Origin: Diadema antillarum
Taxonomy: Eukaryota
Assembly (NCBI RefSeq): GCF_040938485.1
Contig: NW_027272951.1
Coordinates: 1-64,000 of the forward strand
Length of the DNA stretch: 64,000 bases
Reading direction: 5' to 3'
Positions 15,240 to 41,106 of the stretch are shown here, piece after piece (positions within the stretch are counted from its first letter, which is position 1; each line of letters opens with the position of its first letter). The notes below the pieces were generated by a model. The model was given only the letters and a program-made list of their open reading frames with translations. It did not search any database and was not told where the DNA came from. The translations under genes were made by a program, and so were the position numbers.

Positions 15240-15780
15240 CTTGTTAAAAACTCTTCTGAAGTTGTGTGATTGATACCACGGTACTCAGGAGTGACTACTC
15301 CAAAGCACTTGGGTTTTGCTTGAGCTGATGAAGGCTGCTAAGGATTACGAAGTAATCGAAATTGAATCCGTTTGGAATTTTTCATAAAAAGCCGAGTATG
15401 ACCCTAATACCAACACAAAGGGTTTATTTACATCTCACATCAACACTCTCCTAAAAATCAAGCAAGAAGCTTCACGATGGCCAAAGTGAGCAAAATCTGA
15501 AGAGGACAAGGCTCGGTTCAGGAGGGACTGCCATCTAAATGTGGGGATATGGTTAGAACCAGACAAAATTGTCAAGAACAAGGGTTAGCAGTCCCTGTCA
15601 AACCTCATGTTGAATTCTTTCGGGGGATGTTTTAGTACGAGGACCAATCTGCCAAGTGTCAAAGTCATAAATTGTCTGCAAAACATTGTACTCCATGCTG
15701 ACTTCCAATCAAATCATCATCGCTGATTTGAACTTTGTCACCAAAGAAGTGATTGAGGTCAAGTTGGTGAAAAGGGACAA
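15240..15780 (+). pseudogene. Decayed Polinton/Maverick-type protein-primed DNA polymerase B fragment
   Basis: Hand translation with stops and shifts: STWVLLELMKAAKDYEVIEIESVWNF..GLFTSHINTLLKIKQEASRWP..GIWLEPDKIVKNKG*QSLSNLMLNSFGGCFSTRTNL. This matches the pPolB pattern LKxKQEASGWP..KNPGxRxxAKLxLNSxWGKF. Confidence 0.8.
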
Positions 15781-16347
15781 ATTTGATAGCTGAAGCAAGA
15801 TATAGGCATCACTTTCCTGCAACAATGCAGGTGTTAACTAGCGATGACATTGAAATGGAAACAGACAAATTCCACCTGGTTTCAGCAGAACAAAAAACTC
15901 ACGCTTCGTAAAGGGGCTGGGTGTGCTCCTCTTTGGATCAGACATGCTGAGGACCAGCTGCATTGAGGGCAAGGTTTGCCCCAGTTTCAAGGACCGTCCT
16001 GTCAAGGCTTCCTTGGATCCAGAACGTTTGAAAGCTTTAATTAGAAAAATTAATCATTATTTATGATTCAGTTAAAGCTTTTGTTCAACGCAGACTTGAT
16101 AGGACTAACCCAATAAATAGCTTTGTTATCCTTTTCTGAGTCGTCTCCACAAAAGTTGCTATGATAGGTCCTTAACCCAATATCTGTTAGGAGGCAATAA
16201 CATTGGCTCTGCGTGTTTTGCTGGATTGCGGAAGCTGATTGGATGTACAACTTGTAGTGTATATGTACCCGCTCTGTATTTGATTGAGCACAGCATCCTG
16301 GAAAAAAAAAGAAACAGTGGATGACCAATATGTACCTAAGAGAGGCC

Positions 16348-16655
16348 AACAGGTACGGCCAAAATGAGTAAAATCTGAAGAGGATGAGGCTCTATACATC
16401 AGGGACAGCCATCAAAATGAGTGGATATGGTTAGAACCACACAAAATTGTCAAGAACAAGGGTTAGCAGTCCCTATCAAACTCATGTTGAATTCCTTCGG
16501 AGGATGTTTCGATACGAGGACCAATCTGCCGAGTGTCAAAGTCATAAATTGTCTGCACAACATTGTACTCCATGCTGACTTCCGATCAAATCATCATCAC
16601 TGATTTGAACTTTGTCACCAAAGAAGTGATTGAGGTCAAGTTGGTGAAAAGGGAT
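16348..16655 (+). pseudogene. Second, shorter copy of the pPolB fragment
   Basis: Direct repeat of about 15479-15778; ORF 16421-16603 contains KLMLNSFGGCF..RTNL. Confidence 0.8.
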
Positions 16656-16889
16656 GAATTAGATGTGCAAAGGCCCTGTAATCCCTATGAGTTTTCTTTT
16701 AAACATTAATCATCAGCTCTGATCTATCATCCCAAATTTGCAACCTGCTCTGCATGTCCTATGTACTTCACCTTCCAAATTCAGTTCAGATTGATTATTT
16801 TTATTCAAAAATACACAGTTAAAGGGTTGTTTTTATTACTTTCTCTTGTAGATACAAGGCAGTGACAAGAGCCTCACAGAGCAATATCA

Positions 16890-17160: not shown

Positions 17161-20100
17161 TGCTCATACCTACCTTGCTTATCAAGCCAAGACTAATCTA
17201 AGATCCTGTGTGTCACAATACAGATACGAAACATGATGATTATCAACCGATGATGACGATGAACCAGAGATAATTGATAAAAATACAATGGCAAAAACAA
17301 AATGAAAAAAGTATTACAATTTTTACACTCTATCAGCAAGTAAACAAGATTAACTCTTAATGTGCCAGGCCCAAAACCCCTAACGTGCCAGAGATTTTTA
17401 GCCAGTGCTCGGAAGCTCCGAATCTGGATAGACAGGGTAATTTCAAACTGTCATATCTCTGTAATTACTGCTTGTTTTGAAATGTTGTCTGCACAAAAAA
17501 TGTGGAGAAATGGTAATTCTTTCGTGCCATGTCGTCAGTTTGCAGTAATATTTATCCTAATTTGAAATATTGCTGAAAGAAATCATATCATAAAAAAATT
17601 ATTAAGAAATTTTGGGTAGCATGAAAAGGAAGAATTAATTGTGAATTTTCTTCAATAGAACGTGTGTTTGACTCTGTGACAAAGTTTTAGATATACATTT
17701 TTTCTTTCGAATGATACCACATTTGTCAACTAGAGTCGTATACTTTCAAAGATATTCGCAGTTTGTTTTGCCCATGCAATTTACTTTTTTGACCGAGTAG
17801 TTCATTCCCAAACTTTGGTTATTTAGTCCCGGTTCCTCTTTGAGAGTAAAGGTAATTGTCCCGGGTCTTGGAGGAGAGTCTTTCCACTCTTTTATCCATT
17901 TGAGCAGGAAGTGCCAACAGTAATCCCTCTTTTGTTAGTGTGAGGGGCGAGCGTGCCCTATTGAAATCGGCAGTCCTTTGTCGGTGAGGGGCTCGTTGGC
18001 GTGCGAGCCCATGGTCACAGGCGGAGATAATCCGAGGATGCCTTGAACAATGTGCTACACTGTTGGACCAAAAAATATCTTATTGACAATGCGGCGCATG
18101 CCTTCCTTATTATTTCATCAAAAGTCTACGAGTAATCGATCAATGGTCAGTTCCTTGTTTTGCGTAGCTACCCACCACCAAAGCGATCGCGGCATGACTA
18201 AAGTGTAACCTTAGTAACTTCATAACAACGACGCGTGTTTGGCTCACAACAAGCGATTTACTCACAGCACCACGAGGACAGCCGCTGAAACCTGCAGTTG
18301 AAGCCACGTGCTTGTTGCGCCTAGCGCTGGCTGAAACCAGATACGTGGAACAAAGTGGAATTTGAAAATATAGCACTACACATATCTACATAATCCTCAT
18401 TCTGAAACGTTCACCAGATTTTGAAGAGCAATCAGACCCTCATCTAGGTCTAATATTCCCGCGAACTGTATGCGAACATCGTTTTGTAGGAATATGAAAT
18501 TCTCAAACTAATTAGTCTATTTCAAAATGAAGGACATAATGGCACACAGACCAAGAACTACACATCCATATGAAATAAACAAAGGTTACTGATAGTTCAT
18601 TTGCGTGCACTGCAGTGCGGTGATTCGGGGGGGGGGGGGGGGAGGCGTAAAGAAATGGAGAGAGTGATTTTTGGTTTGCGTATTTCTGAATATTTCAAAA
18701 GATTTTGATCGGTAACAATATCATTGTTTACTGAAATTATTTTGGAGCTTAGTGAGTTTCATTTTCGTATCGCACCAATATTATGACCATGTGAAAAAAT
18801 CTATTACTTTGCTTTTTGACGTGATCGGTACATTGGGTGTTGGGTAACACTTACAAACAGAATATCAGCGATATTAGAGGTATCCCAGAAATTGTACTTC
18901 ACTTCGGAAAAGTGTTTTGATGCTGGACCTTCGCATGACGGCAGATTCATTTCCCGACATTTTAACCGCTAACGTCTCACAACCTTAGTAATATCGGAGA
19001 AAACTGCAAAATCAGAATGTAAAGTCTAGCACTCATCCGTCGCGAAAGTCATGCATCCACACATCAAAGAATATGATCAAGTCAAGCACGCATCCTTATG
19101 TTTTGAAAAAAAAAGAAAATATATATAAAATTGTTAAACATTATATGATTAGTATGATCACGTTATTTGAGGTAAAAAAAAAAAAAAACATAAGGGAAAA
19201 CATTTGAGGTGCAGTAAAAACTAAAATCTTTCCAACAAAATTACCATGATGCAAAATGATAGAAAGAGAGAATCAAAGGACTTCAAAAATCATCGTACCC
19301 GTGTAGCAGCTATAAAGAAGAAGGCAATGCTGGTAAGTGGGATTGAGCCGCCGGGGCAACAAAATATCAAGCAAAGAAACAAGATGTCAATCAATCAAAC
19401 AAACAAACAACGAAAAGAAACTACAAACATAAAGACAACCTTTAGAAACTCTGCTAATGTGGGCTTTTTTGATGTCATTATCTCTCTTTTGAAATTACGT
19501 CTCCTTACTCGCTAATCGCTCCTGATTAGTTTACGTTATTCAGCAGTATAGTCAATACAGCTATCTTCTGTCGGAAGATCTGAGGCGCTTTTCTTATTGC
19601 TGCTAATTCTGTTCACTACACGTCTTGTAACTCAGAGTGTCATCTTTTTCTCTAGCAGAAACAGTATTTACACTCTATACTGTCGAAGTTCAGTCGTCCC
19701 GGTGTAGCGTAGAATGCTAGCTTCATTATTCATACTTTTCTTTATCAATTTTTATGATTTCGATCACTGATCGTGCCTTTGCATAAATCAAAGTATGTGC
19801 TCTGTCTCACCCTCTCTTTCTCTCTCCCTCACTCTCTCTTTATATCTTGCCCCTCAACTTCTTCATTTCTGATCGTTGACTTGTTATTCACATTAGGCAT
19901 AATTGACTGTGAAGTTACGATAATCTCAATGTCAATAGTAATCACTATCGCTGCAAAGGAAGGGGGAAGTTTTCGCCGTCTGGTTCATGAGTTCAATTAG
20001 ATACGCTCAATGATGATAATAATTATACATAATAAATGAATGCATGTACACGCCAAATACAGAATGAGCTGTTTTTCACGTTTGTAGTTTCGTATACATC

Positions 20101-21047
20101 CATGCAATCACTCGTATGCTGTAGGATGCATATAGGATGATGCTTCATTTCGCTACAAACTGAAGGGTTTCAAGGAATGAATGCAGAACACAGGTGGTAC
20201 TGAAACTCATATTTTGTTGTGCACAGAAATGAAGCAAAATATGCTATAGGCAAAGGGAGTCGAAGTAATTCCTGTCAAAGATTAATTTGGAAACGTGTTT
20301 TACTGACCTAAAAACTCAAACCATGTTCAATAAAGCGTAGGTGTCACGCTAGTATATAAGTTTCATTCACAGGCTTCGACTATAACTATCATAGGGCTCT
20401 TCTAGTCTTCATAAAACATGTATCGTTTTCTTGCAGCTCCGCGATGCTCACTGCATTTGAAAGTCGACCGAAAGAACTCTCACAAAAGGCGAAGTTTGTA
20501 TATGCTTATATATACTGCGTTTATTCATGAACTAAAGCTTTCTTTGAACATGCAAAATCTTCACAACTTATGCTACCATCAGGGGAGGTCTCTTGAATTC
20601 TTGGTTTCTGTTCTGTACGTTGCTCTGATTGACTCTTCTTTCTTGGTAAAGACCCTATCTGCGCTAATGATAATCATTTCCTATTTTTTCTCACAGTCCG
20701 TCGAAATCAGAGGCCTTCCTTCAACACCCTGTCATTACCACATTCTTCATACAAGGTACCCCACGTATTTCAAGTACCTGTATACAGCTTGTTGATTTTC
20801 TTTTTTTGATAACAATTAGATGCATTACTGACATAATCACTTCTTGAAAAATGTACACGAAAATCGTTGGCACAATGCATACAGTCAATCCACGTTGCTA
20901 TAGACATGATGGAGGATGGTTATGGAAATACATGTACGGACCCATCACAACAGCCACGTCCCACCGGTATCGAGACAGGAGTAATGCAACTGGAATGGAC
21001 AGAATTTGAATCTGTTTTGAAAATTGAATAATACAGAGCTAAAAAAT

Positions 21048-22064
21048 GATAGTTTGATTTTTTTTAAGAACATGTGAATACCTCTAGTATCCAAAATTCA
21101 CGGAAATGGGTATTGTACTGCCCGCGATCTTCAATTCTGATCTGTGGTAACAGCGAGTTCTTCAGATCGGCGACGCTAACATCAAGACGGCGCAGATTCC
21201 CGTGTTGGACAATGATCATGGCTGTTGGCTGTGTCGCGCATGTTCAGAACATAATGATCTGCCTGATTAGCGTCCTCTTAGCGTTTGCGAGGCAAATCTT
21301 TAGTTCGTGTTTATACCACTGTGTGGTCAAGATGAGAGAGATGAATGGCAAGTTTTATGATTGAAACTTGTCTGTGTTCTTTCTTTCCTTTTTCTCGCAA
21401 AAGCTGATTGCTTTTCTTATAGGCTACAACACGGTATTATGTATCCTGAAGAAGCTTTGCAAAGCGGAATAAACAAAAAAATCTGACTGCAGCATGAAGG
21501 AGAAGCATTTTATGTTCTGCTTTACATGGTACATATTTTGTCCTATACTATTATGACAGAGAAGAAGCGCCGTCTTAGGTTATCAAGCGCAGTCGTTATA
21601 ACATTACTGTCAAAATATATATATATATATATACTTCTATATACATGTCGGTAGAAAAGATGAAGAAGTAGAATGGTAATGAATTTTGAAAGTCCGAATG
21701 TGCTAATAAATAGCACTGTTGGACTGTCAAAATGCATTACCACTCTACTTGTTTATCTTTTCTTTACTGGTACCAACACGCGGACTATGAGTTTCATAAT
21801 ACATAATCATAATCTATATATATATATAGCATACAAGGTGAAGCGGCTTGGCCTCCTACGTTGTGGGTGCTGCATTATATTCATGTGTAGGTGTGTCGGG
21901 AAAGACTGCTCGCAGATGTTGCAGTAATGTTCACTAATAGCCTTTTACTCTCCCAAGCTTTCGACCGAGTTACCAGTCTTTTTCAAGGGCTTGGAACGTA
22001 AACACAAAAGCAGAAAAGCAACCAATTTGCATACATTTGAACAGAATAAGGCAAAATCGTATAT

Positions 22065-22135
<71 letters not shown>

Positions 22136-24317
22136 CAACAGTAGGTCAATATAAACTCCGTTGGAGACATAAATTTGACGCATTTTCGCCCATAGGGCTT
22201 TGTCAAGTCAATACATTTGACACTTTACGTCTCCAACGGAGTTTATATTGACCTACTGTAGTGAATCTATACTTTCTTAGGACTCCGAGAAGAAACTATT
22301 TGTTGCTGTTATATATATATACATATATATATTATATATATATATATATATTATACATATAAGAGAGAGAGAGAGAGCGAGGAAGAGAAGGCGCCTTGTA
22401 CAGAACAAGTGTACATGTAGCTACTTCATTATTCATCCAGGGTGAGAAGATAAGGGCATTCACGAACGTAGTTCAACGAATGTGTGTATACGTGGAACAT
22501 GTACGTTGAATTATCTATACGTCCATGAATGCCTTTATCTATTCCCACTCTGCATATTATGTATGTATGTATATCTTTTAAATCGACATGACAATGCTTT
22601 ATTGAAATGAATATTTAATTTCTTTTCAATATTTAGTTCGTTGACATACTTGATGAAACCTAGATTTACAGCCCACAATCAATTGCGCGATAATATAGTC
22701 TGTCACAATCATTCACGTGTTTGATTCTGCTGGCAGAAAAGGTACAATATGACAGGGAAAAGGTAAGGTTGACATTCGCAATTGAGGTGTTGCCAGTTCA
22801 AAACACTCATTCCCCATTATTTTACGAGTGTTTACAGACCGATATTCTTGTTTCGACGGGATAAGTTCATATATTTCCATAGTTTGACCAACAAAATACT
22901 GACACATGTTTTTCGAATGTAACAAACCATGACCAAGGTTGGATATCATGGCCTTCTTTTGTCTGAGGCGGTCTTTCGGTAGGCGCTTTCATCTATGCAA
23001 ATAAGGCACTCTTATTGTATTCGCGGTGAGGTGGCGTGGCCATGAAACATCTATTCACGCGTGCCGCGCCTTTATTATGGGCTAGGTTTTGGAAATAGGC
23101 GGTACTCTTTCTTTTCAGGTCTTTCAAACGAAAGTTTTATTCTAGAGCTATAATAACCTTTGCTTATACGTGATTGGCGAAGGTATCGAACGTTGATAGT
23201 TTTAATCCTGCTATTCTATCACCCGAACTGATCACATTGACTTACATAAGAAGGGGGAAATTGCCAGTGATCATCATTTATCTCGATCGATAGTGTGATT
23301 TTTTTATGCACATGTGAATACCTCTAGTATCCAAAATTCATGGAAATGGGTATTCTACTACCCGAGATCTTCAATTCTGATCTGTGGTAACAGCGAGTTC
23401 TTCAGATCGGCGACGCTAACATCAAGACGGCGCAGCCTCCCGTGTTGGACAATGATCATGGCTGTTGGCTGTGTCGCGCATGTTCAGAACATAATGATCT
23501 GCCTGATTAGCGTCCTCTTAGCGTTTGCGTGGCAAATCTTTAGTTCGTGTTTATACCACTGTGTGGTCAAGATGAGAGAGATGAATGGCAAGTTTTACGT
23601 TTGAAACTTGTCTGTGTTCTTTCTTTCCTTTTTCTCACAAAAGCTGATTGCTTTTCTTATAGGCTACAACAACACGGTATTATGTATGCTGAAGAAGCTT
23701 TGCAAAACGGGATAAAAAAATCTGACTGAAGCATGAAGGAGAAGCATTTTTATGTTCTGCTTTACATGGTACATATTTTGTCCTATACTATTATGACAGA
23801 GAAGAAGCGCCGTCCTAGGTTATCAAGTGCAGTTGTTATAACATTGCTGAATTTATAATTGTATGTAAGATACATATATTTTGGTATATATATATATATT
23901 TCTATATACATGTAGACAGAAAAAATGATGATGAAGATGAAGACTGTCAAAATGCATTACCACTCTACTTTTTCATCTTTTCTATACCTACTGGTACCAA
24001 CACGCGGACTAAACGTTTCATTATATATAATCATATATATACAACATATAAGGTGAAGCGGGCTTGGCCTCCTACGTTGTGGGTGCTGAATTATATTTAT
24101 GTGTAGGTGTGACGGGAAAGACTGCTCGCAGACGTTGCAGTAATGTTCACTAATAGCCTTTTACTCTCCCAAGCTTTCGACGGAGTTACCAGTCTTTTTC
24201 AAGGGCTTGGGACGTAAACACAAAAGCGCGCAAAAAAGCAACCAATTTGCATACATTTGAACAGAATAAGGCAAAATTATTAATATTATAAAGATACACA
24301 TATGTGTATTAAAAATA

Positions 24318-24366
<49 letters not shown>

Positions 24367-29642: not shown

Positions 29643-32600
29643 GACAGATGGATATTGAGGTTAACGTTACAACAATAATTTGAAGTTATTCATATATCAT
29701 AGAGAGATATAATAATTTTACCTCGACTTCTTCACTTATTTTGTGAAGTAAAGATTTGAGTTAACGACATTCTTGTATGACCAAATTGCACCAATTATTG
29801 AATATTGAAAAAGGCTGCGTCTTGATCGTTTGTATGGATAGTACCCCCCCCCAAAAAAAAAAAAAGAACACACACACACACACATATATCAAACAACACA
29901 CAAACAAGAATCAAGGCAAGTTCCACAACAAAAGGTTTGATTATACGGGTACACTTAGTTCTATCTTAGATTAGAACAAAAAAGCTAAGCTAAAAAAAGG
30001 TCAAAATCACGTTGCACTTTGCACAAATTACGTAAAACAGCGTCAGGTGTCAAGTAAGACAGCCTACAGTACTGTGATCTGTTGTATTTGCCAAATTTAT
30101 TCACGAAATTTTGTAGAAGAGGAAGTGCAAGAGAGTTGCTCGCCAAGTATATGAGGAGCTCATTGATACACAACAACAATAAGAAGAAATAAAGACATAT
30201 CGCAAGGTTCGTAAGTCCACAGGGTTTTAGTGAGAGTTTAGTCAGTTTGAATGACTTCCGCTATCTTGGAAAGTCCTTCACGTACGTTTTTGGATTTGAT
30301 CAATGTCAACATTGGAATTCCTTTTGTTGACTAGTTTTGTTGAGCACTTTACCATTTTGCAAAACATGGGACACTTATCGTCAGAAGAAAGTACACAATA
30401 AACGCATACAAAGGGCCAAAAAGATAGGACATTAGCTATCGCGATGTGTGCTTTGTGAATGTCTATGAATCGTTTACTATGTATACAGTAGGAGAGCGGA
30501 TCGTATCACCGAACGCCTTTTTTTTTGTGGCTTTGAATTCAGCACAAAGTGGATGAAATGTCGGCAAAAAATAACACCGGTTATTCACAAAGTCCTGAAA
30601 ATACGAATTCAGCAAAAGTACGCAAATTATTCACTCAGGTTTTTGGAGAATAGGCTTCAAGTATATCTTTCTCTCCAAAAATTTAAAAAAAAATCAAAAG
30701 TTGTCTTTTACAACCGCAAAAAAAAAAAAAATCGCATTATAATTAGGTACATGATTTTCGTAATGGCATAGTCAATGCTTTCACATCTTGTTCTTGCACC
30801 AGAACCACAATTCTTACCCAAGGTTCACTACATGTACCTACTAGTATTCTTACCGAGGGGAGGACAAAGAGAAAAAGAATCGGCTAATGAGGCTCATTTT
30901 TTTTTTCTCACCGCAAAATGTCTAATACGAACATTTTGAATAGTTCCCATGATAAAATCTTGCGATAAATCGACATCTTCTTCTAAATCTGAGGTAAAAT
31001 GTGAATTTCTTAACGTTTTTGCATTTTTGTGTTGCATTCTATTTTTGCGGTTTCGGTCCTTATAAACGATTTGTGAGGCCAGTCTACGAGGTCCCGCGAG
31101 TATTGAAGATCGTAAGTACGCAGAAATATGCGTACGAAATTACTATGATGTCGGGCACTACCATACCAGCTGCATTATGTATTCAGTACTTCCCTTTCTC
31201 AAGGTGTGTATATCGAACTCTTTCTAGCGCTAATGATATTATGTAATGACACATTCATACACAAAAGGGGACTATACCTGGGTATTTTTATACCCTTTTC
31301 ACCTCCCCCTCTTTTTCTACCATTCTGTCTTTAGTCCTAAAGTACGCCAACCTAAATTTCTCCTGGTATTCACTTTCATTTGGACAAGGAGACCGGCAAT
31401 GACAGGCTAAAAACAATGACGATCACGTCAACGCAAATTATATGGATGTGCCGTGCGGCTTAGTTCACGAGTCAAGTTTTCGCTTGCTGGTACGCGTGCA
31501 TACACAAGGACAAAGGCGTTTTCTTCTTTTGTATCTGATTGTATGTAAGCGTCGGGACGATTACAGTACATCAAACAGACAAAAGGATGAAAGGCTTGAC
31601 CGTCAAAATAAAAGCTGACCTTCTCTGAGGGACAAAATGAAAGCATGCTTTCAGCCGTCCCGCAGGACAGCATCCAAGCGGAACAAGACGACTGGAACCT
31701 CATAGAAAAGACACGCAGACTCAATAGCGTACACACGCGTGGTTTACCAATGAGACTTTTGATTTATACACAGCTCACAGAGGGTGCGCTCACGCCGAAT
31801 TTTCCCGGCGCGAAGAAAACATACCTTGTCGAAAAATCATGAATTTACTCTAAAAAATCCTATGTAAGCATACACAAATATTTAGTTCAAACGATAGATA
31901 CACTTATCTGCTATCATTATATATCAATGGCAGTTTCATAGTGCAAGTAATTATGATACCACAAACATTTTAATGAGCAGGAGTTTTCTTGCTCTTCTTA
32001 GTCGCCGATCGGCGACCATGGCACGTCAGGACTATGGTCGCCGATCGGCGACCATGGCACGTTAAGAGTTAATGTAGATTGTCACTCAAATGCAAAGTCC
32101 CATGACATTTGCTGATAAGTTATCATCATGTTGGGGGGGGGGGGCCACCATAGTTATATTCATGTTAGGTAGCTGGTTGTAATCTAATAATTCAAAAATA
32201 CTCAGGCCCTCCCTAAATTGACATTTTGTTGTGCAATTAGAAAACAACACAGACTAGTTAAAAATTTCTGTTGGGTAGTCAAAAATTTTGCGGACTATCC
32301 AAAATTGATTCTAACTTGTCTGCCTGGGTAGTTAAAAAAAAAGTTAAGCGCAACCCCTTATCAGATCTGCCCACAGTTTTTACGTTTCATGCTTTCTGAT
32401 CAAATTATTACCTACAACTACTGTGTACTATGCATCAAGAGAAGTATTTGTGCCAGTGTATGAGTGGGAGAGTTATCTCTCTTCTCACTATTGACAGTTT
32501 CCCCAGATCAAGTTGTATCACCATTTCTACACTGAGTGCTAAAATCCTGGTATGGTCTTTTTCCAAGGAGAGGGTTGATGGCCCTAGGAAATCATTTAAC

Positions 32601-37959: not shown

Positions 37960-40900
37960 TAGTGAAGTACATCAAGTTAAACAGATGGTAGGGAGGTATT
38001 CTCATGCTTTCAGTCAGTCTGATACAGATTTAGGACACAGTAAGATAATTGAGCATTCCATCCCCCTGACAGACCCACCGGAGGGTACCCCCGTCACTCT
38101 ATGCTGAATTGCGCAAACACCTTGAATCGATGCACCAGGCAGGCGTTATTAGAGAGTCATTTTCGCCCTATGCAAGCCCAGTTGTTTTGGTACGAAAGAA
38201 AGACGGGTCTTTACGATTTTGCATTGATTTTCGAAAGTTGAACCAGAAAACCGTTCGTGACTCGTACGCCTTGCCCAGAATAGACGAGACCTTGCAGATG
38301 ATGCAGGGCGCCAGGTGGTTTAGTTCGCTAGATCTGAAGTCGGAGTACTGGCAGTTAGAGATTAATGAGGCAGACAAGCACAAAACCGCGTTCGTACTAT
38401 CCCTCCCCTAGGTCTCTGGGAATGCAATAGAATGCCATTCGGATTATGTAATGCCCCGAGCACCTTCCAGCGCGCGATGGAGCGAAGCCTTGGCAAGTTG
38501 AATCATTCATGCTATGTGGTCTACCTAGACGATATTACTGTATTTGGTCGGACTGTCGAAAAGCATATCGCAAATCTGGAAATGGTTATTCAGTGATTAG
38601 ACATCATGGCATCAAACTAAAGGCGACAAAGTGCAAACTTTTGCAGACAAGTATCAAATACTTAGGTCATGTTTTGTCTGTGGAGGGCATTGCGACTGAC
38701 CCGGAAAGACAGAGACAATCAGAAACTGGCCCACCCCACAAAATGTCAAAGAATTAAGGGCTTTCCTTGGATTGGCTAGTTATTACAGGAAGTTCATTCC
38801 AACTGGCCAAGATAGCCAGCCCTTTAAATGCGCTGCTCGGTGGACCTAGGAAGAGAAAGGGAAAAGGTAAACACAAGACCCCATCACCTGCTGCCCCTCC
38901 CCCATGGGTCTGGGCTAAGAAACAAAATGATGCTTTCCGGAAGATGAAAAGAAAAGCTAATGAGCCCCCCTGTCCTCCAATACGCCGACTTTTCGAAGCC
39001 CTTCATACTCCATACGGATGCGAGTACGACCGGTCTTGGGGCTTCATTATATCAACTTGACGAGGAAGGTAGGGAGCGAGTAATAGCGTATGCAAGCCGA
39101 TCTGTAAGCAGAAGTGAACAAAACTGACCCGCCCACAAATTGGAATTTTTAGCTCTGAAATGGGCTGTGACAGAAAAGTTCCTGCCCCTGTAGGTAAAAG
39201 GAAAAGGGAGGAAACTGAAGTTCAAATGTTGTTGCGGGAATGGGATAATTTGGCCATGAGGGATAAGTTGGCCATGAGGGATGGTATCCTTTACCGAAGA
39301 AGGGTTGTGAATGACAACCAAGTGTGGCAACTAGTCCTTCCTAGGAAGTATCGCCAATTAGTCCTAGAGTCCTTACATGATGAAACAGGCCATCTCGGAA
39401 TAGAGCGGACAACTGAGTTGGTCCGGGATCGATTTTATTGGCCTTTTCTGAGTCGGGACGTCAAAAATCACGTCAGCATTTGTGGACGCTGCATACGCAC
39501 GAAGGGTACTCTGAACACACATAACACTGCCCCCCGAGTTAATATCAAGTCCATCAGACCCCTGGAATTAGTATGCATGGACTATTTGACGTTGTGTTTG
39601 GGGAGTCAAAGGGAGGGTATAGTAATATTCTTGTCATTACTGACCATTTTACCCGATATGTTGTAGCTGTCCCTAAGCGCAATCAAACTGCGAGCACCAC
39701 TGCCAAAGCTTTGTTTGATAACTTTTTGGTTCGTTATGGTTTTTCGGAACGTCCGCACTCAGAACAAGGGATAGATTTTTAGTCTGATGTGATTTGACAG
39801 CTGTGACAGCTGTGCAAACTAGTGGGTACACAAAAATCTAGGACCTCCCCATACCATCCCCAGGGTAATGGAAGTTGTGAGAGGATGAATAGGACCCTGC
39901 TGAGTATGCTCGGGACACTTTCAGAAGAAAAGAAAAGCAATTGGAAATCTCATGCCCCTCTCATACATGCGTACAATTGCACAAAACACGACACTACCAG
40001 GTTTTCCCCTTTCTACCTTATGTACAGTACCTAGGCATCCCCGCCTCCCCATTGATATGTACTTAGGGCTCAATGCTGGAGATGACGACACATCACATGA
40101 TAATGAGCCAGGATATGTCGCGGGTCTGCGAGATAGACTATCATATGCTTACAAACTCGCAGCAGAGCGCAGCGATAAAGCCGGAGTTCGGAATAAGGTC
40201 ACATATGATAGGCGTGCACGTGAAAACAAAATTGAGAAAGGTGACCAAGTGCTGATTAGAAATGTAGGGGTCACAGGTAAACAGAAACTTGGCAACAAAT
40301 GGGGTAAGGTTCCTTGTGTAGTTAATGAGCAGCCGAATGCCGATATACCTGTATATAAGGTCCGCCCAGAAGTAGGCACAGGGAAAACTAATGTTTTGCA
40401 TCGTAATCTCTTATTCCCGTGTAACTTTCTATCAAGAGAGATTCGCCCCAATAATCAGTGCCCCTCCCCCAAGAGAAGGATTCCCCCGGTAAATGAGAAC
40501 AATGAAAACCAAACCTATGATCCCGTCGTTGATGACTTAGAGGAAAATGAGGTAACGGCCTGGAATATTCCAGCAGTAGGGACAGAAGAGGGTGCATCCT
40601 CGGGTGTAGACACCGTAGATTTTGAGACCCCTCAAGAAGAAGAAACACATGAGATTTCTGTTATTCCCGATACCCCTGGGATTCCCGAAGTTACCCAGGT
40701 ACCAGACTCCCCAGGGCAAGGTGTGCAAGAGACCACCTCTCTTGAAGAGGAGGATCGTCAACCCAGACGGTCGAAAAGATGTCCGCATCCCCCTAGTAGG
40801 TTGGCGTACTATCATAGCCAGGTAATTCAACCAGTTGTTGAGAATGAGACAGGTTGTCTTGCTTTGTATGGCTTAGTAAATCTGATGTTTGTGAAAATTG

Positions 40901-41106
40901 TGTTTCTAGTGTTCTCACTGACTGAGGTATTTGTAAGTGTTGGATTGGTGCTGTCAGAACTTTTGCTGTCATCGTTTCCTAGCATAGAGGAACAGTTTGT
41001 TGACATTGTACGTGCACGCAAAACACCAATTTGTTCAGGATGCAAGACGAAGAGATTGTTAGGAAAATGGAGACTCAGGAAGGTAGAAAAGAAAGCTACC
41101 ACTTGA
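37960..41106 (+). mobile_element. Degenerate Ty3/Gypsy retrotransposon pol (RT, partial RNase H, integrase)
   Basis: YASPVVLVRKKDGSLRFCIDFRKLN, SLDLK, MPFGL, YLDD (about 38522), [43 protein letters not shown]; many frameshifts and stops; no matching LTR pair found. Confidence 0.93.

Follow-up and report, generated by a model that had tools for sequence, protein, structure and literature searches.

The stretch of Diadema antillarum DNA presented above (contig NW_027272951.1, positions 1 to 64,000 of the forward strand), which at its full length of 64,000 nucleotides (nt) is referred to here as the window, holds between positions 17354 and 32068 what is best explained as one whole, recently inserted autonomous transposon of the piggyBac superfamily, with a 615-residue transposase of the three-aspartate (DDD) type, ending in a Cys-rich tail, as its sole gene; we put the probability of this reading at roughly 0.88. 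The element is a single insertion with 14-nt inverted ends, a duplicated TTAA target site and one intact transposase gene, and its past movement as a unit is documented by paired copies elsewhere in the genome, their TTAA flanks, an empty allele, low divergence between copies, and hemizygosity. Natural cut-and-paste transposons are usually lean; the present element is a member of a known superfamily with a known mode of transposition, and what is unusual about it is its size, the lack of genes in its internal DNA (the cargo), and the lack of a compact autonomous sibling. We infer that the transposase, judged by its sequence, is still active, and that the cargo has no function of its own.

Ends, target site and transposase

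The features of the element, from left to right, are as follows.

17350-17353, no strand: TTAA target site, left copy of the duplication (a single TTAA is present in the empty allele on contig C17)
17354-17367, plus strand: left terminal inverted repeat (TIR), 14 nt, complementary to the right end at 13 of 14 positions and beginning CTCTTA, which fits the published end motif of piggyBac-like elements (PBLEs) (PMC5381638)
17354-17400, plus strand: left cis region, comprising the TIR, a spacer and a second TAACGTGCCAG copy (17381-17390); of its 47 positions, 45 do not vary between the giant element and 13 short or mid-size relatives, with ~75% identity further in
17354-18036, plus strand: left subterminal DNA, common to 1.15-kb and 3.3-5.5-kb non-autonomous relatives (74-81%)
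18037-21058, no strand: left unique cargo, apparently non-coding, whole at 98-100% in ~37 copies; no Pfam, Rfam or tRNA match
21059-23298, plus strand: tandem unit 1 of a 2.25-kb block, with a nested palindromic miniature inverted-repeat transposable element (MITE, ~130 nt) at ~22132-22265, copies of which also lie outside the element
23299-25590, plus strand: tandem unit 2, with a nested high-copy repeat (~150 nt) at ~24377-24527; ends 75 nt before the ATG
25666-27513, plus strand: transposase gene, 615 residues, one exon, D283/D361/D473, C-terminal Cys-rich tail (Pfam PF13843, E 1.4e-86)
27514-31454, no strand: right cargo, apparently non-coding, with (GA)n microsatellites and a run of N; no Pfam match
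31455-32068, plus strand: right subterminal DNA, common to short relatives (79-83%)
32001-32068, plus strand: right cis region, two direct 26-nt modules (32001-32026 and 32037-32062), nearly invariant among relatives
32055-32068, minus strand: right TIR, 14 nt, an inverted-end match flanked by TTAA
32069-32072, no strand: TTAA target site, right copy of the duplication (single on C17)

An earlier note on this DNA, made from the letters alone, had placed matching TTAA-flanked ends at 17350-17367 and 32055-32072, and this is where they lie: the left end reads TTAA followed by CTCTTAATGTGCCA, the right end reads TGGCACGTTAAGAG followed by TTAA, and the two are complementary at 13 of 14 positions. 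Within the 64-kb window, five occurrences of the motif TRAYGTGCCA were counted (0.58 expected), and four of them are the terminal and subterminal copies at the ends (17358, 17381, 32019, and 32055), those at 17381 and 32019 being the second, internal copies that the note had seen, one at each end. A 16-nt palindrome, GTCGCCGATCGGCGAC, is present in exactly two copies (32001-32016 and 32037-32052; 0 expected); two copies had been claimed for the right end and two there are, their position alone needing correction, by one base to the left of that implied. The right end is built of two direct 26-nt modules, each consisting of the palindrome plus CATGGCACGT, the second of which continues into the TIR. 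Published PBLEs have TIRs of 12-19 bp that start with C[C/A/T][C/A/T][T/G/A][T/A/G][T/G/A], often with subterminal repeats (PMC5381638); here, the TIR is 14 nt long, starts with CTCTTA, and is accompanied by such repeats. TTAA is duplicated around this copy; it also borders 58 of the 59 ends scored in other copies, and all 13 of the short or mid-size relatives compared. The left cis region (17354-17400) is probably a transposase binding site.

Midway along the element lies the uninterrupted DDD transposase with a Cys-rich tail that the note had described, its open reading frame (ORF) starting 8,312 nt from the left end and stopping 4,555 nt from the right end, in agreement with the offsets of ~8.3 and ~4.5 kb given there. 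The 615-residue product matches the Pfam profile PF13843 (DDE_Tnp_1_7) over residues 136-508, covering the full profile with E 1.4e-86, and it also aligns with two transposases of solved structure, piggyBat (9c0f, E 7.5e-45) and piggyBac (6x67, E 5.2e-37). Three residues, taken to be the catalytic aspartates as in piggyBac, stand in conserved motifs—D283 in LSIDES, D361 in VMDNYY, and D473 in NGVDKMD (plus D476)—each of which aligns with the matching motif of piggyBat 9c0f. The tail, with CX2C at 573, 591, and 600 plus a His, was aligned to the piggyBat tail, weakly when taken alone (9.6 bits), and a Pfam scan of the 615-residue protein gave no match to the Cys-rich domain profile PF13842. The protein is identical to the NCBI entry 'piggyBac transposable element-derived protein 4-like [Diadema antillarum]'; the closest transposases outside Diadema are two proteins at 53% identity, one of them from Lytechinus pictus, followed by other echinoid proteins at 46-47%, and identity to Uribo1 is 33-36%. 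The guanine-plus-cytosine (GC) content is 50-53% in the gene vs. 29-42% in the cargo, with its minimum in windows around the run of N.

The established piggyBac mechanism is applied to this element because the TTAA target, the short TIRs with subterminal repeats, the PF13843 domain, and the DDD residues were all found, the alignment of the Cys-rich tail being weaker. By analogy, a transposase dimer would recognize the 14-nt inverted ends together with the adjacent repeated motifs (47 nt at the left, 68 nt at the right), with the palindromic subterminal repeats as the probable target of the Cys-rich domain; the element would then be excised and integrated at a TTAA, which is duplicated in the process. 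The remaining ~12.9 kb would travel passively with the unit. At the ends, this passive DNA would consist of subterminal sequence from the family ancestor, ~0.7 kb on the left and 0.6 kb on the right, and, in the interior, of a duplicated 2.25-kb block, later MITE hits, microsatellites, and ~7 kb of unique, seemingly non-coding DNA.

Copies, age and short relatives

The first and last 300 nt of the element each gave ~40 matches at 99-100% identity in the assembly, and pairing of these ends by contig and strand yielded 37 elements. Thirty-one of them, on different contigs, measure 14,657-15,255 nt; the others are 12.45 and 12.66 kb (contigs C961 and C477), 16.6, 21.9, and 23.7 kb, and 5.66 kb (C98). 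A typical element is ~15 kb long, and the present copy ~14.7 kb. Their flanks are mutually different, and those fetched start with TTAA in 29 of 30 cases on the left and in 29 of 29 on the right, so that the other full-length copies with unique flanks and TTAA duplications that the note had proposed to look for do exist. The only non-TTAA copy, on C67, has AGAA as its left flank with a TTAA 4 nt further out, and its transposase carries a stop codon. The interior is collinear overall at 96-100%, the left cargo (17700-21050) being whole at 98-100% in ~37 copies, and since a unique piece of the right cargo has only 41 first-look candidates, the full-length family is put at ~40 copies in the assembly. 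In the C961 and C477 copies, one tandem unit is absent (2.35 kb from left cargo to gene, vs. 4.62 kb), while the C98 copy is a deletion derivative in which 19442 is joined to 28668 and the transposase gene is lost. Two elements of unusual and nearly equal length, C28:1433158-1449811 and C28:1790953-1807604 (16,654 and 16,652 nt), lie 357 kb apart in opposite orientation; an additional insert shared by a subfamily, or duplication of a segment, may account for them.

An empty TTAA site in another haplotype had also been proposed as a check, and one was found on contig C17: the 1 kb to the left of the insertion matches C17 and ends exactly at the insertion point, where left flank, one TTAA, and right flank are contiguous (flanks 94-98% identical to those of the window). 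This empty allele thus differs from the window by exactly 17354-32068 plus one TTAA, and it is compatible with a site that was never occupied or with one from which the element was precisely excised. The assembly is an uncollapsed hifiasm assembly of one diploid individual in which both haplotypes were kept, with 84% of BUSCO genes duplicated and a heterozygosity of 2.52% (PMC13511894; bioRxiv 10.64898/2026.05.24.727502). C17 is best read as the other allele of the same individual, and the window copy is therefore hemizygous. All-vs-all comparison of flanks (600 nt each) revealed no allelic pairs among 30 left flanks and one among 30 right flanks (C587 and C113, 100% identical); with a single allelic partner pair among the flanks compared, nearly all insertions are on one haplotype only. 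For the C976 copy, the flank used in the empty-site test is itself a high-copy repeat. For the C1974 copy, which lies within a tandemly repeated host unit (region C1974:123789-141855), empty sites were found on C557 (C557:762352-766103) and in the paralogous next unit of the array on its own contig, 16 kb downstream and 97% identical. To the left of the window insertion, there are two copies of a ~307-nt repeat (15479-15787 and 16357-16664, 91% alike), with copies at ~79% on at least nine other contigs.

The spread of the family appears to be very recent. Over the outer 1.8 kb, the median pairwise substitution divergence is 0.34% at both ends, well under the host allelic diversity of 2.52%, and singleton variants outnumber shared ones by 178 to 15 and 205 to 19 at the two ends. 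A full open frame of 620 codons is kept in 31 copies, at least 17 of which encode a protein identical to that of the window. The note had called the element potentially active, and the sequence evidence backs that wording through these 31 intact frames, the low divergence, and near-universal hemizygosity.

The ends are shared much more widely than the giant element itself. An exact 16-nt end pattern has 952 matches in the genome vs. 4 for the reversed control, the end family comprises ~470 elements, and among the first 38 end pairs listed, 24 are 1.14-1.18 kb long, nine are 1.8-5.5 kb, and five are at least 14.9 kb. Most end matches belong to an older, 1.15-kb non-autonomous family. In fourteen of the listed end-paired elements that were compared, the 1.15-kb members join ~630 nt of left end to ~490-530 nt of right end, always between TTAA, and are 74-83% identical to the giant's subterminal DNA and 92-97% identical among themselves; members of 3.3-5.5 kb have the same ends with unrelated internal DNA and no transposase. 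Across these relatives, the outermost 47 nt on the left (45 of them invariant) and 68 nt on the right hardly vary, and identity drops abruptly further inward, where the relatives are only 75-82% alike. Such sharp conservation of the ends is the pattern expected of transposase recognition sequences, which suggests that one transposase lineage served all three size classes; the transposase of the giant would also have moved some 200-300 short elements whose ends are identical. The genome showed no second intact transposase of this lineage: the nearest relatives are decayed, at 63-77% identity, and other piggyBac families are at most 35% identical. A second, unrelated piggyBac family (32% identical), of which at least seven copies (on contigs C198, C456, C714, C640, C515 and others) keep an intact 597-codon frame, may also be active.

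Four mid-size relatives contain long frames of 184-254 codons, three of which cross the right end; these were rejected as a gene, as they have no Pfam match, are broken in the giant, and read through palindromes. In the 3.6-3.9-kb relatives at C16:2653186-2656958, C2:2420203-2424315, and C29:391974-396098, the frame (236-254 codons) passes through the right subterminal region and TIR, and is probably due to chance.

The element, or part of it, also occurs in 13 sequencing runs from five studies, and contigs from four runs were examined. In a run of study P3 ('organism B'), a 2,254-nt contig spans 25549-27802 with 15 differences, ten of them in the ORF; half of these ten are synonymous, and of the five replacements, four lie in the poorly conserved N-terminal 150 residues. 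Cargo pieces from both sides are present in the same run at an even depth of ~25. Runs that bear the same species label disagree: those of study P3 contain the element at ~99% identity, whereas in those of study P6, which are of similar size, neither transposase nor cargo is present and only the nested high-copy repeat matches (window 23000-28960). The split could reflect presence or absence among populations or sister species, recent spread, or a mislabelled sample; if the giant form has lately been invading Diadema populations, a doubtful reading considered below, it could be the trace of a very recent expansion or of horizontal transfer between lineages of Diadema.

Internal DNA and competing explanations

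The cargo looks non-coding as far as the present tools can see. Rfam and tRNA scans of the element returned no match, and a Pfam search of 23 cargo ORFs of at least 60 amino acids yielded nothing above threshold, only sub-threshold noise. In the left cargo, there are 15 open frames of at least 80 codons where local shuffles lead one to expect 4.8, the longest being 162 codons; as candidate genes, these were rejected, for they either cross the MITE and (TA)n/(GA)n tracts or represent a single duplicated stretch counted twice. The statement in the earlier note that there is no long cargo ORF thus holds, in that no cargo frame is protein-like, and of the two options it had left for any cargo, "non-coding or heavily spliced", the first is favored by the tandem duplication, nested MITEs, and microsatellites, and the second is disfavored.

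The two tandem units are 93-100% alike in their unique parts and 39% alike at the MITE sites, and each carries a different small element at the same relative position. Because the units diverge more from each other than the copies of the transposon do, and because the tandem block is found in every scored copy, the duplication predates the burst. The ~150-nt repeat of unit 2 has near-identical copies on C657, C112, and C23 (1419 first-look candidates), and reaches a depth of up to 56,000 in sequencing runs without the transposon. Set against 140 kb of unrelated flanking DNA, the element showed no recurring piece other than the two nested MITEs, although this comparison is of low power. The simplest history of the element would be that an ancestor with ends of ~0.7 and 0.6 kb acquired non-coding DNA in its interior, underwent a tandem duplication, and received two MITEs, after which one master copy burst very recently.

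Several observations weigh against the interpretation of the element as an autonomous unit with passive cargo. No compact (2.5-4 kb) autonomous version of the transposase was seen in the genome, which would be a little unexpected for cargo that is nothing but ballast; about ten copies have a broken transposase frame (frameshifted, stopped or truncated); and short exons, or genes unknown to Pfam, could escape the scans. In addition, none of the 13 runs in which the element occurs is recorded as RNA, and the contigs examined are unspliced, of low depth, and from both strands, and hence probably DNA.

Among the alternatives, the one that survives best is that the cargo is functional for the element itself, the 8.3 kb upstream, duplicated block included, and/or the 4.5 kb downstream of the gene holding promoters, enhancers, insulators or non-coding RNA. 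Germline expression or protection from silencing would follow, and would explain why only the giant form multiplied; we consider this unlikely. It draws on the missing compact sibling, on the retention of the whole cargo in 31 of 37 copies, and on the pattern of identity between the tandem units, which are 97-100% alike in the last 265 nt and first 500 nt and 78-95% alike in the middle. There is also a precedent in Pokey of Daphnia, in which non-coding tandem repeats lie upstream of a piggyBac transposase (PMC3575242). Yet a burst at 0.34% divergence is too young for retention to reveal selection, the C961 and C477 copies keep intact frames with one tandem unit fewer, two MITE insertions and many microsatellites have been tolerated, and short relatives without any cargo multiplied more. 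A stronger form, in which the cargo would be an adaptive module (a duplicated germline promoter/enhancer block or an anti-silencing sequence) and the giant form would recently be invading, or re-invading, Diadema populations, is likewise doubtful.

It is much less probable that the cargo holds heavily spliced or unknown protein genes, which would make this a gene-carrying or virus-fused element like Teratorn. The excess of long frames in the left cargo would point that way, but those frames trace to (TA)n/(GA)n tracts, the MITE or the duplicated stretch; none of the 23 ORFs matched Pfam above threshold and Rfam matched nothing, and cargo GC is far from that of the gene.

A run of N at 28968-29169, between (GA)n tracts and 1.45 kb past the transposase stop, raised the question of whether the two ends belong together. 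The stretches that flank it (28300-28860 and 29660-30220) were compared by coordinates with those in other copies: each was found in 39 of them at 97-100% identity, in the same order and on the same strand, and the start-to-start spacing, worked out in 14 other copies, is 1351-1403 nt vs. 1360 nt in the window. Both pieces are confined to copies of the family (41 and 91 first-look candidates, respectively). Since order, strand, and spacing are kept, the element is one collinear unit and the length of the run is about right; in the 5.66-kb C98 derivative, the interval that corresponds to the 202 N measures 177 nt by BLAST coordinates. The assembly paper gives the same total length, 1,754,659,819 bp, with a total gap length of zero (PMC13511894), which makes a mask the more likely origin of the run than a gap in the assembly. 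The ORFs that seem to cross it are artefacts produced by translation into X, and with the run 1.45 kb downstream of the stop codon, the reading frame is unaffected.

The notion that two separate elements, or two short ones forming a composite, meet at the run, or that the assembly is chimeric here, is suggested by the position of the run inside the stretch and the abundance of short elements with the same ends; it has next to no probability left and was rejected in view of the collinearity across the run in other copies, the absence of internal ends from the window in motif and palindrome scans, an empty allele that removes exactly 17354-32068 and one TTAA, and the presence of the element in runs from five studies. 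The outcomes that the earlier note had named as fatal to a single element, namely separate ends joined across the run and much nearer end partners, were looked for and did not occur.

Elsewhere in the window, a 384-residue ORF on the plus strand (39952-41106) gave no Pfam match; its sequence may resemble the C-terminal part of a long terminal repeat (LTR) retrotransposon integrase.

Significance and comparison with known systems

A 15-kb autonomous piggyBac that was moved whole dozens of times indicates that members of this superfamily can proliferate in nature despite a large size, and almost all of its insertions are still hemizygous in a wild animal. Mining pipelines confined to the near surroundings of the gene (a few kb) will overlook elements of this kind. 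With an intact, apparently recent echinoderm transposase and minimal ends of 47 and 68 nt, the element is a candidate tool for large-cargo transgenesis in sea urchins, and its polymorphic insertions offer ready-made markers for a keystone reef species under conservation study. Neither of the two D. antillarum genome papers mentions piggyBac, and a literature search on piggyBac and Diadema found nothing relevant.

The element shares with canonical PBLEs, such as piggyBac of T. ni, piggyBat of Myotis, and Uribo of Xenopus, the TTAA duplication, 14-nt TIRs, asymmetric subterminal repeats, a single-exon DDD transposase, and a putative C-terminal Cys-rich domain, but it differs from them in size, its gene being 8.3 and 4.6 kb from the ends and the whole about five times as large as usual. 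In a survey of 157 PBLEs, lengths ranged from 1,721 to 8,451 bp with a mean of 2,813 (PMC5381638), and a mining study from 2025 obtained a mean of 3,298 bp while extending no more than 4 kb to either side of the gene (PMC13461360); since the Diadema gene is 8.3 kb from the left end, such mining would miss that end.

Teratorn of medaka and other teleosts is likewise a giant unit moved by a piggyBac-type transposase, with copies that are still mobile (PMC5601938, PMC6431247). It is, however, 41-182 kb long, with a herpesvirus genome of ~90 genes as cargo, whereas the 12 kb of cargo in Diadema contains no recognizable gene; no herpesvirus gene (such as those for DNA polymerase, capsid or terminase) was found by Pfam in cargo ORFs of at least 60 amino acids, the longest frame being a microsatellite artefact. 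In Pokey of Daphnia, too, non-coding repeats lie within the element on the upstream side of the transposase, and imperfect TIRs of 16 bp abut TTAA (PMC3575242). Its repeats are short and derive from the ribosomal DNA (rDNA) spacer, its target is 28S rDNA, and its gene contains an intron; the Diadema element, in contrast, has two 2.25-kb units and insertions scattered over many contigs.

Movement of units much larger than 10 kb by piggyBac transposases is also suggested by PiggyBac-1 of cichlids with its piwil1 duplicates (PMC11753138), although a one-sided capture of host genes by a dead element is proposed in that case, and is seen with engineered giant vectors in mouse cells (PMC3239208), which are artificial. 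As engineered piggyBac moves at least 100 kb (PMC3239208, PMC6431247), a length of 15 kb meets no mechanistic bar. Compared with the cichlid and vector cases, the Diadema element is natural and autonomous, and has moved at least 30 times as a 15-kb unit.

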